Assembly: GCF_006345805.1 (NCBI RefSeq)
Contig: NC_042998.1
Location: forward strand, 128,464,001 to 128,528,000
From: Octopus sinensis
Taxonomy: Eukaryota
Length of the DNA stretch: 64,000 nucleotides
Direction of reading: 5' to 3'
The notes under the pieces were generated by a model. It worked only from the letters and a program-made list of their open reading frames with translations, was not told the DNA's origin and made no database searches. The position numbers and the translations under genes are program-made. Positions 21,401-39,400 of this stretch are shown one piece after another; the stretch's first letter is position 1, and each line of letters starts with the position of its first letter.

Positions 21401-24400
21401 AACTCTGACAGGTTATTATATTGCTATAAATTGAAATGGGACCAGCTTGCATGTACATAATCAGCTAAAATCATCTTTAAGAGCAACATATCTAGACTAA
21501 AAGCAGATAAGCACAGATTTCACAATTTCACATACAACCCATACTCTGTGTGTTCAATAGTCATTCCATTAAGATAAACACCATTAAATGCATAATTACA
21601 TAACTTCAATTAAATTCAAAAACTGTTTTTATTCAAATGGTCAGGAATACTATGTATTGTATTAATCAGAAAGCTGTAACTGGTTTAAATACACTGAGAC
21701 AAAGAGGACAACAGAGGATTAAGAAATCCCTAATTCAAATTCCATCAATATTAACCTTGCCTTTCATCTTATTTTTGTAAGGGTGGGCTTATAAAGTACT
21801 AAACCAGAGCAATGGATTGGTGAAATTGTTAGAGTATTGGATGAGAAGCCTTACAATATTTATATGGCTCTGCGTTCTGAGTTCAAATTCCACCAATTAT
21901 CTGTATAGCTGGAAGTAGGGTGTTTGGAACTTGACCATGGAGATAAACCTTTCAATGTTATATGGAATGATTTGCATTAATGTAAAAATACACAGACTCT
22001 CTATTGCAATAGGACAAACACCAGGAAAAAAAATTATCTTAGAAATGAGGTTCCAATATTATTATTATTATTATTTTATGCGCCCTTTTCAAGCCTAGCC
22101 AGGCTCATGGGCCCGGTTTCCATTGCCTATGTGTTCCCCCCAGCTGGACGGGACACCAGTCCATCGCAGCATTACTCAAGAAACAGGAAGAAAGAGTGAG
22201 AGAAAGTTGGGGCGAAAGAGTACAACAGGGGTCACCCCCTCCTGCCAGAGCCTCGTGGAGCTTTAGGTGTTTTCGCTCAATAAACACACACAATGCCCAG
22301 TCTGGGAATCGAAACTGCGATTCTCCCACTGCGAGTCTGCTGCCCTAACCACTGGGCCATTGCGCTTCCACTCCAATATTATTATGAATAAGACTAACTG
22401 AATTTCTTTTTATTTCTGTATATGTATTCTAGTACTTGTATTATTACATTTCTTACAACTTGACTTCATTAACTGTCAATGAATAATTAATAATTACCTT
22501 CAGTTCACCAATAGTATTGGATTCAGAATCTTCAGTGTCCTTTCCTCGAAGCATTGTGAATGAATGGCAGAAATCTGAGAACTCTGAAAAGCTTTCACAA
22601 TTTTCAAGTTCATCATTATAAACCTGGAAAAAGAGATTAAATTCTTAATCATCAGTAATATTCAACTTGTCACCACATGTTCAAATGTTACGACAGTAAA
22701 ATAGTAAGAGAGTGACGAAAAAGTAATGTGTTAATGGTGGAGGGGTGGGGTGGACGTGGCATCAGCCAGAGAGAAAAGAAAATAGAAACAAAAAAGTTAC
22801 ACTGGATATTTATTATATTGTTACTAACACTAAGTTATTTGAATCTAATTTTTAAACAACCTAAATAACCTGGAGCACTGCCTTGAAGGGTTTTAGTTGA
22901 ATGAATTGACCCCAGGACATTATTTTAAAGCCTAGTACTTATTCTATTGGTGAACTGCTAAGTTACGGGGACATAAACACATCAACACCGACTGTCAAGT
23001 GGTGATGGGGGTACAAACAGACACACACATATATTATTATAGACATATATATATATACACAACAGGCTTCTTTCAATTTCTGTCTACCAAATCCACTTAA
23101 CAAAGCTTTGGTTGACTCAAGGCTATAGTAGAAGACAGTTGCCCAAGGTGCAATGCAGTGGGATTGAACCTGGAACCATGTGGTTGGGAAGCAAGATTCT
23201 TACCACACAGCCATGCCTGTACCAGTAGACAATTTTTTTTAGCTGTACCATAACTAAAATAATCAACGTAAGGAATTTAAAATGCTGGACTGTTTATTTT
23301 TCTACTATTTCATCTTATCCTTCTGTAATTTGGACTTAATAAAATGAGTACAGAGGTTAGTGTGTGTATGAGGGTGGGGGATGTTCAAGTACGCTACTCT
23401 CATTTTACCAAGCTTTCTTCTGGTTAAAGTTATATTTTGGAAACAAAGTAATTTTTCCAACATTACCATCATAGCTTTTTATTCCTCATAATGATTTTTT
23501 TTTTTGGCTCAGAACATCCTGAGTAGAGTTCGAAATTGCTCAGAGACTACACTGATATATAAAACATTTCTGATTAAAAAAAAAAAAAAGAAACACTTGT
23601 TTTTGATTACTCTAAAGAGTGAGAGAACCATTTGAGATTAACAAAACATAGAGCACTTGAGAAGTGAAAATTCTTTTTTTCTTCATCTTGTGACAAGTTA
23701 CTAATAACAAGACAACATTCTACTTATAAAATAAATATTTGATATCAGAAACTTTACTTAAAATACAAAATAAATAGAATTAATGTCTATGAAAAACAAA
23801 TTGCAAAATCAATGTCAAAAATATGTTAAAAACTACTATCAGCATTACTTTGTATGAAAACTTAGCTGTTATTTGAGAAACAGTTGAAATAAAAATACTG
23901 CATGATGTAAATATTTTAAATTCGTTTCCATTAAAATACCTAAAATGCTGTAATTCAGAGCCATTTAGAAATACTCAAAATGGTTTCCATCAACAGTCTT
24001 ATCTTGTGATTTATTTCAAGAATATTTTGAAATGTAATACAATAATTACTTACAACAAGCTTGTCATATCCTTTTTCAATGTATTTCTTGCACTTTCCAC
24101 TGTCCCCAATAGAAGCATAATACTTAGACCACCAGTCAATTTCAAGATCTAACAAATCTGTTTTCTCCTGTTAACAAAGATATATAAAGTAAGTCCAATG
24201 CAATGAAAAATAATTATTAGGAATTCAATTTGAATTGAAAGCTTTCCAATATTTTAATGAAAATATGATATTACTCACATTTAACAATCAATATAATTTT
24301 ACATAGCTAGAAAAACATAAACACAAAACAAGATTGAATACATGAAAAATATAATAAAAAAAGGCATTTCCCATAAAAATTAAATTTAAGTTTGCTCCAT

Positions 24401-36400: not shown

Positions 36401-39400
36401 GTCAAATATACTTATGACGAATGCAAATGGTTGCTAAACTGTAATGTCAAATGTGAAAAAGAACTTGAAAATCTAAATCTAAGATTTTAATATTAATTCT
36501 TTTGCAGATTATATTAGCCTAAATTTTAATATGTCTAGATTAGAGATTGGAATCCCAAGCACACAGTTTCTAAGACTGATGTTATAAATATATAATCATC
36601 ATCATTATTTAACATGTTTTCCATGCTGGCATGGGTTGACTGAAGCTGGTAAGGCCAGGGGTCGCACCAGGCTTTATTGTCTATTTGGTATGGTTTCTAT
36701 GCTTGGATGCCCTTCCTAATACAAACCACTCCATAAAGTGTGTTGGGTGCTTTTAATGTGGCACCAGCACAAGTATTTTTTACATGGCACCAACACCAGT
36801 ATCAGTTCTGTTGTGGTGGACAGGTGAGCCATGAAGAAGATTTTGTTTTTACATTAGTATATGTGTTTTTATAGCTGGAGTTTATCAAATCAGTGTCGTT
36901 ATTCTAATTTCCTTTCAAACACTGAATGGATTTCACAAGTTTGCTGATGTTGTCCTCAATGTTGGCTTACCATGCTGGCATGAGTTATATATATATATAT
37001 ATATATATATATATATATATATTATATATATATATATATAGATATATATATATATATATATATATAAGAAAGAATTTAAAATATTTGATGATTAAAATAA
37101 TAAAGGCACAAAACTGAAACTAAATGTAAAGTTAGATTGTTTTGAATTTCAAAGATTAAAAACAGATTTTGATGACCATATGCCATTACTGCTCTGCTAG
37201 TTAATCTTCTTGTGCTTTCAAAGTAGTGTTCACTCACACAAATACTAAGAGCTGATTATCTGTCATTTACATATAAACCAATGAACAAAAAAATAGAAGT
37301 TTATAGTTCCTGAAGTATAATATTTTCTAAAGACTTTCTAGCCATGTATATCATATTTCTAAATCAATACCATACTGTATCTTTGTATACTACTACGATG
37401 TAAAGTTTGAAATAGTTTCTGAAGGATGATTAGGAGAAATATGTTAAGTAAAAAATAATGTGTAACCTAATTAAAAAAAACCCAATTAAATTTCAGGTTA
37501 ATTTTTAACCCTTTTGTTATCATATTTCAGTTGAGATACAACACTTTTGTTTCAATTTTAAAAATAATGAACAATTTAGTAAAATAACTGACATTATTAG
37601 GTTGGTATTTGCAACATAAATTGATGAAATTTTAATGGTAGGCATTAGTTTGGATCACTTTAAAACAGTAAGTTAAGTGTTGTAGAACCAGAGATTGGTA
37701 CCAAAAGGGTTAAATTAAGTTTTCCCTTATGGTGACTGTAAGTGCAGGTGGAAAGCATAGTATATGTGATATGTAGCAAAGTTTGTGTTGAAGCAGAAAG
37801 TAGTAGGAAATGAATGGTGAATATTTTTACCTTTTTGCCTTGTGGCATCTCATCAGTTGGCATATCAATAGCCATTTCAGCAGGTGGGCCATTGCCAGGT
37901 GTTTCTCCTGAAAATACAGTTTAAAGGAAATAGTCAAAGAGAATAGAGTAGAGGTAAATATATTTGATGTCCCCTGTTTACTTTCAATGTTTAAGAATTC
38001 AAATTCTGTCATAAATACCTCCTAAATTTTCCAGACTACTAAATAAGCTGCAGTCTAATAGTGAAGTTAAATAATCAGCCACACTATTTCCATTTTATTC
38101 ATGCACAATCTACATTAGGTGTAATATGTTCAATAATTAAAATAAAACTATTTTCTAACCGAATGAATTATTTCTTTTATTAAATCCCCTAGCAAATCAA
38201 ACAAATCACTTTGTGTGTTTCCTGTTACTTCTAAGGGGGTACCTAGTATATCTTGTATAAGACAGGCTTACATGAGAGGAGTCTCTATATGACTGCTCAA
38301 TCTGCTATAAATAGTAGCCAAATCTGCCCCAAGACCTATCCTTAGAGTAAGGGTAAGACCTGAGGTAGAAAGAAAGATGTATTAGATAATGTAGTTGTAA
38401 ACAAGGGTCATAAGTCTGCTGATTCAATCAGAGATGATCTGAGCCAAAAGCACCAACAAGCCACCACTGTATAAACAATGTTGTCCAGAAAATTTTATTA
38501 TCATTCTTTTGTATTAGTGAACAAGGGACAAGAATATAGTTTTTTTCATGAATGAAACTTATCATCATCATTGTTTAATGTCTGTTTTCCATGCTGGCAT
38601 GGGTTGAATGGTTTGACAGGAGCTGCCAGCTGAGAACTGTCCAGGCTCCAATTGTCTGTTTTGGCATGGTTTCTATTGGCTGCATACCCTTCCTAACACC
38701 AACCATTTTACAGAGTGTACTGGGTACCTTTTATGTGCTACCAGCATGAGTGCTTATACATGGTACTAGCACAGATGTATTTTATGTGGCACTGGTACAA
38801 ATGCAACTTAACCTGACACCAGCACAAGTGCATTTTAACATGGCATTGGTACAATTATTATGAACTAAGGGACCAAATTATTACAGTTATAAAACTACTA
38901 TTTGCCAAGAATGAAATCATTAACTTTACAGAATAGAACAGAAAATTAAGTATAATATATATTAGTCAATGAATGCTGATTCATTCCTTAAGCTGAAAAT
39001 GAAAAAGTTAGACATTTTTAATTGAGGTTAACTATTGCAAAAGAGAATATACAAAGAGTGGATGTGCAGTGAAAAGCTTGCTTCCCAACTACATGGTTCT
39101 GGGGATCAATCCCACTGTGTGGCACCTTGGGCAAGTGTCTTCTATGATAGCTTTGGGCCAGCCAAAGCCTTGTGAGTGGATTTGTTATGCAGAAACTGAA
39201 AGAAATCTGTCGTGTATGGGCGTGTCCATCCCACTACCACTTGACAACCAGTGTTAGTGTGTTTATATCCCTGTAACTTAGCAATTTGGCAAAAGAGACT
39301 GATAGAATAAGTACAAGGCTTAAAAAAAAAAAAGTACTGGGGTGGACGATGCATTCAACTAAAAATTCTCCAAGGTGGTGCCCCAGCCTGGTTGCAGTTT

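Follow-up and report, generated by a model that had tools for sequence, protein, structure and literature searches.

To our knowledge, exon 40a of dysferlin (DYSF) is the only cassette exon of a ferlin with a demonstrated mechanism, namely calpain release of a synaptotagmin-like repair module. The exon sits between DYSF exons 40 and 41 and confers calpain cleavage in human dysferlin (Redpath et al. 2014, PMC4230592), and myoferlin (MYOF) and otoferlin are likewise cleaved to dual-C2 modules (PMC12264198). In the cryo-electron microscopy structure of human myoferlin, residues 1395-1498 form an "anchor loop" of the C2E domain between strands β6 and β7, and the ordered part of this loop, 1447-1498, wraps C2F and C2G. 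Here we describe the corresponding intron, and the optional exons within it, in the myoferlin gene of Octopus sinensis, which lies on the minus strand of a 64,000-nt stretch of contig NC_042998.1 (positions 128,464,001 to 128,528,000, assembly GCF_006345805.1); this whole stretch is called the window, and coordinates refer to it unless another locus is named.

The intron very probably holds two bona fide phase-0 cassette exons, A (75 nt) and B (99 nt), each included or skipped independently of the other, with the remaining exon-like segments in it arising by chance. An initial annotation, made from the sequence alone, had listed six candidate exons of 75, 3, 84, 99, 9 and 12 nt and had proposed that this mollusc expanded the site into a combinatorial splice module of up to 64 combinations. 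A combinatorial module does exist at the site, but with two elements and four annotated combinations. Because A and B are already present in RefSeq gene models, the gain from the present analysis is interpretive, and no new gene feature is added.

Results

The window contains the C-terminal three quarters of the gene. Its spliced translation was identical to myoferlin isoform X2 (XP_036355168.1, P0135), with 0 mismatches over residues 556-2066 by exact threading, and 35 of 35 introns on that path, which uses both A and B, were GT-AG. The C2E-C2F segment matched the human myoferlin chain (E = 2e-118) and the dysferlin chain (E = 1e-117), and the full-length Octopus protein matched the Pfam families PF08151, PF08165, PF08150, PF06398, PF16165, PF22901 and PF00168; with multiple C2 domains, FerI, FerA, FerB, DysF and a Ferlin_C/transmembrane (TM) tail, the protein is a type-I ferlin of the dysferlin/myoferlin group. 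The intron had been described initially as the longest one, in phase 0 and directly before the EIDWWSK exon, and this was confirmed. With both cassettes skipped it spans 24168..37830 on the minus strand (13,663 nt, GT...AG, phase 0, 30% G+C) and is the longest intron in the window if no internal exon is used, while inclusion of A and B divides it into sub-introns of 2066, 5232 and 6191 nt. The constitutive exon upstream (37831..37907, minus strand, 77 nt, (G) and 25 residues) has phase 1 at its start and phase 0 at its end, its terminal ...MPQGKK falling on a codon boundary followed by GTAAAA, and the constitutive exon downstream (24054..24167, minus strand, 114 nt, 38 residues, phase 0/0) is preceded by ...TTAACAG.

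The position of this intron relative to exon 40a was established from the DYSF locus of a tinamou (L002), which was threaded with its own protein for exon phases. There, a 75-nt exon reading DDVS...PLIPSQ (start phase 1, end phase 0) is followed in order by a 3,491-nt intron, exon 40a (LAEGMTSSPLINMPASPVSDPH, 66 nt, phase 0/0), a 6,482-nt intron and the EEEFIDWWSK exon; the two introns flanking 40a rank among the longest of the tinamou gene. The EEEFIDWWSK exon ends in phase 0 between ...TLTV and VYETELE, and the equivalent octopus boundary falls between ...KLV and VYNDELE. Thus octopus exon 37907..37831 is the counterpart of the DDVS...PLIPSQ exon and 24167..24054 that of DYSF exon 41, and since flanking boundaries and phases are equal, comparison of the two gene structures supports orthology of the octopus intron with the DYSF exon 40/41 intron, in agreement with the placement first suggested. 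Pairs of lizard and bird dysferlin isoforms show that the 21-aa block between ...PLIPVQ and EEEFIDWWSK is optional, and 40a measures 63 nt in lizards as compared with 66 nt in the tinamou. Like 40a, the octopus cassettes are phase 0/0, optional, located directly before the xxxIDWWSK exon and within the C2E anchor loop. Unlike dysferlin, with its single cassette, octopus has two, and whereas 40a is Pro/Ser/Thr-rich with a demonstrated calpain site, octopus A is basic and octopus B acidic with an FPQxELP core. Neither has detectable sequence similarity to 40a: in the comparison with vertebrate cassettes that the initial annotation had proposed, a profile of 12 vertebrate 40a/MYOF cassettes gave A -3.4 bits and B no score, at or below shuffled controls.

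Cassette A is located at 35690..35764 on the minus strand (75 nt, phase 0/0, 25 residues, net charge +5). Its acceptor, ...tttcctggacag, and its donor, GTAAAA, scored 4.9 and 7.1, respectively, with position weight matrices (PWMs) trained on the 33 constitutive sites of the gene and applied to every candidate. Cassette B, at 30359..30457 on the minus strand (99 nt, phase 0/0, 33 residues, net charge -4, motif SFPQMDLP), has an acceptor consisting of a T-run and aaag (PWM 7.1) and a weak donor, GTTTGT (PWM 5.9). Scores for both cassettes were below the median of constitutive sites. Regulated cassettes typically have weak splice sites, so that the sub-median sites of A and B and the GTTTGT donor of B fit regulated exons.

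Both exons were found in gene models of other octopuses. In O. bimaculoides myoferlin isoform X1 (P0002), recovered by a padded full-length protein search, the translations of A and then B stand directly after ...PQGKK, with A identical to that of O. sinensis and B identical at 31/33 residues. Among the 16 isoforms that were readable at the site, from three Octopus species, A and B occurred together in 10 (O. bimaculoides X1, X2, X4 and X8; O. sinensis X1, X2, X6, X7, X12 and X13), A only in 3 (O. sinensis X10; O. vulgaris X4 and X10), B only in 1 (O. bimaculoides X5) and neither in 2 (O. bimaculoides X7; O. vulgaris X11). All four patterns are therefore represented, and A and B are modelled as independent cassettes. 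The O. sinensis X1 protein predicted as X10 plus B (2083 aa) was present as XP_036355167.1 and carries A and B only; as isoform numbering follows length in both species, we infer that the annotated O. sinensis isoforms do not exceed the form with A and B in length. Searches for transcript-derived fragments with junction-spanning protein queries yielded one unrelated match for a 351-aa query and no match for a 142-aa query.

Cassette B has relatives well outside the octopuses. It is homologous to cassette C3 of the abalone Haliotis, to a 29-aa oyster cassette and to inserts in Gigantopelta, Mya, Ruditapes, Pomacea and the nemertean Tubulanus, all sharing the core [FY]PQx[ED]LP. Octopus B scored 21.6 bits against a profile of nine lophotrochozoan B-type cassettes, a value equalled by 0 of 1000 shuffles (maximum 11.5), and a tblastn search with the Haliotis linker found B as its sole match in the octopus intron (E = 1.3e-6). 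By these sequence comparisons, cassette B is conserved across Lophotrochozoa. Cassette A resembles Haliotis C2 and the oyster cassette TRKVLLAKAKSKLDSAISRFK in charge, and charge, at +4 to +6, is all that A and the basic mollusc cassettes share. An in-frame read-through of the intron after B (30358-30323, minus strand) gives 12 residues that align loosely by tblastn with ...EEVDYQDIDWWS, where the following exon begins in bivalves; this similarity may be fortuitous, or may be left over from a duplication or from an ancestral extension of the exon.

The remaining four candidates behave differently. In the intron, 567 segments are bordered by AG...GT, stay open in phase 0 and have lengths divisible by 3. 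Those of the six candidate sizes number 33 (3 nt), 25 (9 nt), 23 (12 nt), 9 (75 nt), 6 (84 nt) and 2 (99 nt), and these properties alone therefore do not discriminate. The initial annotation gave sizes without coordinates, and the six candidates were assigned by best splice-site scores and by the order 75, 3, 84, 99, 9 and 12; as the resulting order equals the original one, they are almost certainly the same six. With PWM thresholds of 4.9 for acceptors and 5.9 for donors, in each case the lower value of the two validated cassettes, exactly 5 segments passed both, of 75, 3, 99, 9 and 12 nt. The 3-nt candidate (34947..34949, minus strand; ACA, Thr) lies between the acceptor ...tttatttcaacag and the donor gtaagtta, with scores of 5.9 and 7.8. 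The best 84-nt candidate located between the 3-nt and 99-nt ones (30693..30776, minus strand; 28 residues) has a good donor, GTAAGT, at 8.1 and a poor acceptor at 0.5, real sites having a median score of 8.5. The 9-nt candidate (26889..26897, minus strand; AAAAAAAAG, KKK) is A8G flanked by a T10 run and GTAGTT, and so lies within a T10/A8 low-complexity stretch, and the apparent polypyrimidine tract of the 12-nt candidate (26671..26682, minus strand; GTGAAATATATT, VKYI) is a T/G-rich 16-nt tandem repeat at 26697..26747.

Inserts of 1, 3, 4 or 28 residues at the cassette site were found in 0 of the 16 readable isoforms, and constructs of X1 with T, KKK or VKYI added had no counterpart in the sequence collection. 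Strong acceptor/donor pairs within 120 nt occurred at 1.17 per kb here vs 0.92 per kb across the gene's remaining 32 introns, and micro-pairs of 15 nt or less numbered 4 in 13.7 kb here vs 9 in 40.3 kb of other introns. No homologues of the 3-, 84-, 9- and 12-nt candidates were found in other ferlins by tblastn and profile comparisons. All four candidate regions are single-copy in the genome searched (2.72 Gb, 13,516 contigs), which is uninformative as to repeat origin. The four are most likely a chance pairing of splice-site-like sequence in an AT-rich intron. A likeness of the TSSAL residues of the 84-nt candidate to 40a was considered and rejected, since the number of 5-mers shared by vertebrate cassettes and the octopus intron did not differ significantly from chance (3 vs 1.3 expected; p = 0.14). 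The site at 34949-34947 (minus strand), within the 5.2-kb sub-intron, combines the near-consensus acceptor tttatttcaacag and a consensus donor gtaagt, and apart from the 3 bases ACA between them it is reminiscent of a recursive-splicing site.

Optional exons at the same place were found in several other animals, and a search of the literature for splicing of octopus ferlins or for invertebrate cassettes at this position turned up no description. Haliotis rufescens has three cassettes of 19, 21 and 28 aa (C1, C2 and C3) in six annotated combinations, and Ostrea edulis has either a 21-aa basic or a 29-aa cassette, the two never being seen together. These and other lophotrochozoan cassettes share with octopus a common insertion point 9-10 residues ahead of DWWSK, and use is combinatorial in both abalone and octopus, with three cassettes in the former vs two in the latter. 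Among vertebrates, frog MYOF has cassettes of 12-13 and 19-23 aa at the site and fish MYOF one of 19-20 aa, with sequences unrelated to the octopus cassettes; the initial annotation had used the name exon 38a for the MYOF element. The intron is thus a hotspot with several splice elements in vertebrates as well. In a MYOF-like gene of stickleback (L003), the orthologous interval, at 985 nt, is far longer than the roughly 100 nt of a typical intron there, and contains a skipped 57-nt phase-0 cassette (FLFSMSAALDKMAPHTSHF, L003:12359-12415) and an annotated 12-nt microexon (CTTGAAGAGAAG, LEEK, L003:13119-13130). A Channa isoform (P0081) is without the four residues at the LEEK position, and human and frog have LTEK and LQEK at the same place. 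Vertebrate MYOF encodes LEEK/LTEK/LQEK by a 12-nt microexon, whereas the mollusc counterpart residues, EKTD... in octopus, appear within the IDWWSK exon. Multi-cassette use in abalone, oysters and vertebrate MYOF means that the initial suggestion of an expansion in this mollusc does not hold, and the octopus arrangement is instead a two-cassette form of an old molluscan module.

Two further optional inserts were noted. Bivalves have an optional block of about 43 aa (…SSPDITQAQLEGLMNAAVNRYKDIQSS…) one intron upstream of the cassette site, seen in oyster, scallop, Magallana and echinoderm isoforms (P0013, P0020, P0029, P0061 and others), and no counterpart of it was found in the preceding octopus intron, 39492..37908. 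In a ferlin of the jellyfish Rhopilema (P0100), a strongly basic 42-aa insert (RPIKKVIKVLGRGVPRKLKLKKAKR…) stands at the equivalent position ahead of LSTDEGIDWWSK and is missing from a closely similar sequence (P0074), a hint that optional basic inserts at the site may predate Bilateria.

Within the protein, the cassettes are inserted at the equivalent of about residue 1443 in human MYOF (with a chain offset such that M1 is chain residue 52). This is inside the 1395-1498 loop and ahead of residue 1447, and therefore A and B lengthen the flexible stretch right before the ordered C2F-binding part of the anchor loop, in what is classically called the C2E-C2F linker. When the C2E-C2F fragment of O. 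bimaculoides was modelled by AlphaFold2 with A and B included, pLDDT was below 50 at residues 99-210, with a short, low-confidence 11-residue helix in A and coil in B.

The intron and the rest of the gene contain several other elements. A mariner/Mos1-type transposon remnant with HTH_48 and Transposase_1 matches lies at 25054..26077 on the plus strand, antisense to the gene, and a second mariner-like open reading frame (ORF) remnant at 33252..34131 on the minus strand, in sense orientation, was recognised by eye, Pfam giving no match below 0.001. Several open candidates with lengths that are multiples of 3 fall inside the mariner remnants, including another of 84 nt at 33749..33666. An Rfam scan of 23000..39000 for intron-hosted RNAs gave no matches. 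The Rbfox-type motif TGCATG occurs 8 times in the intron, at 0.59 per kb vs 0.27 per kb for the remaining introns of the gene (p = 0.03), with copies on the minus strand at 35487-35482, 203 nt downstream of A, and at 30064-30059, 295 nt downstream of B; motif content of this kind is a weak hint of Rbfox-type regulation of the cassettes. Other introns hold transposase-like ORFs at 5898-6642 (minus strand, with piggyBac-like text at about 6150-6550), 16067-16498 (minus strand, with a DDE_3 match at 16067-16345) and 17057-17479 (plus strand), and long (TA)n/(CA)n microsatellites occur as well, among them those at 20100-20330 and 36986-37066. Octopus isoforms also differ in segments outside the window or at its edge: MKTLE (5 aa, 15 nt) near residue 343 and one Gly in a poly-Gly run are optional, a GTYP segment is present in O. 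sinensis isoforms and missing from those of O. bimaculoides and O. vulgaris, and there are alternative N-termini and two C-terminal endings (...GSLNMKDD vs a shorter one).

Discussion

Patterns detected in this intron are consistent with two regulated cassettes, A and B, set in a long AT-rich sequence that produces many exon-like segments by chance. That all six candidates are independently spliced, with up to 64 combinations and an octopus-lineage expansion, would account for the fact that every one combines GT-AG borders with an open frame and a length divisible by 3, that five of them are the sole candidates above both PWM thresholds, that all three micro-loci are multiples of 3 and that a real 12-nt microexon exists in the orthologous intron of fish MYOF. 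It would not account for the zero count of 3-, 9-, 12- and 84-nt inserts in the readable isoforms or for the longest O. sinensis isoform having only A and B, nor for micro-candidates of equal quality at the same density in other introns, the acceptor of the 84-nt candidate, the T-run and tandem repeat that serve as acceptor tracts of the 9-nt and 12-nt candidates, the failure to find homologues of the four extra candidates in other ferlins, and multi-cassette use that is ancestral in molluscs. We regard this explanation as having almost no chance of being correct. A narrower possibility is that at least one of the 3-, 9- and 12-nt candidates is a genuine microexon, probably tissue-restricted, that gene-model pipelines have missed. 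Standard aligners often miss microexons, the splice-site scores of these candidates are good, each of the three loci has a length divisible by 3, none of the regions recurs elsewhere in the genome, and the annotated LEEK microexon of stickleback MYOF is a precedent. Set against this are a candidate density equal to background, the low-complexity context of the 9- and 12-nt candidates, the residues of the vertebrate microexon appearing already fused into the octopus IDWWSK exon (EKTD...) and again the zero count among isoforms, and on balance such a microexon appears unlikely.

It could also be that A and B are themselves annotation artefacts, pseudo-exons promoted by gene-model software, given that the evidence for them is all from predicted isoforms, that their splice-site scores are sub-median and that B uses GTTTGT as a donor. 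However, the O. bimaculoides and O. sinensis models of the two exons arose independently, with protein sequences identical for A and nearly so for B, weak sites are typical of regulated cassettes in general, and B has homologues among the cassettes that gastropods, bivalves and one nemertean carry at this position, and we therefore consider an artefact highly improbable. There are nevertheless several points that weigh against our preferred reading of two bona fide cassettes and four chance candidates. All isoforms are computational RefSeq/ENA models, so that the tally is at annotation level, and its 16 readable isoforms are drawn from 40 Octopus isoforms in a 90% cluster, while the names of the O. 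vulgaris isoforms suggest transfer from O. sinensis. Cassette A scored 2.5 bits against the basic cassettes of oyster, scallop and abalone, with 76 of 1000 shuffles as good, which is not significant, and the idea that A forms a strongly amphipathic helix was rejected, as a hydrophobic moment as high as its value of 0.41 was obtained in 26% of shuffles. Three independent micro-loci would all have multiple-of-3 lengths by chance in about 1/27 of cases, although this is a small sample, and the same intron of fish MYOF does contain a true 12-nt microexon. Finally, the functional consequences of A and B proposed below are entirely inferred.

If A and B are two regulated cassettes, splicing would insert 0, 25, 33 or 58 residues just ahead of xxxIDWWSK and so would set the length of the tether, and it would also set the net charge of the tether, at +5 with A, -4 with B and +1 with both. 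It would add or remove the conserved short linear motif of B and the basic, weakly helical patch of A. The result could be changed tethering of C2E to C2F-C2G-TM, changed membrane or partner contacts, or changed access for a protease. It is possible, though somewhat doubtful, that the octopus cassettes act like 40a by providing a site for calpain or another protease, with Ca2+ influx freeing a C2F-C2G-TM "mini-ferlin". Calpain cleavage of the octopus cassettes would be a reasonable analogy given the equal intron and protein position, the cleavage conferred by 40a (PMC4230592), the dual-C2 products of myoferlin and otoferlin (PMC12264198) and the modelled placement of the cassettes within a predicted disordered, accessible segment. 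The cassettes are, however, without sequence similarity to 40a or to the MYOF cassettes, and the FPQxELP core would appear more like a binding motif than like the Pro/Ser/Thr-rich 40a site. Another comparison is with the linkers between C2A and C2B, which according to a preprint (bioRxiv 10.1101/2025.03.15.643383) are likewise splice-edited disordered inter-domain segments with basic stretches or short linear motifs, and which bind anionic membranes; that linker is a different one, near the N-terminus, and for octopus A membrane binding would be conjecture.

A broader explanation, which we think has only a slim chance of being right in full, is that this intron is an ancient splicing hotspot with several optional mini-exons per lineage, kept from molluscs and nemerteans to vertebrates and, as jellyfish sequences hint, perhaps older, that in Lophotrochozoa B is a conserved docking or cleavage motif deciding whether a C2F-C2G-TM mini-ferlin can be released or re-tethered, and that at least one of the octopus micro-candidates is real. 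If so, the octopus module would have at least three elements, like the cassette and microexon of fish MYOF.

The present findings carry a caution for the study of AT-rich cephalopod introns, where the combination of GT-AG borders, an open frame and a length divisible by 3 recurs hundreds of times per intron. Returning to the reading that A and B are two independent cassettes, they provide concrete peptides with which questions of cleavage, membrane binding and partner binding can be addressed. The presence of cassettes at the orthologous intron in octopus, abalone, oysters, a nemertean, frogs and fish, along with the conserved FPQxELP core, suggests that regulated editing of the anchor loop is an old and general trait of dysferlin/myoferlin-type ferlins, as opposed to a vertebrate peculiarity.

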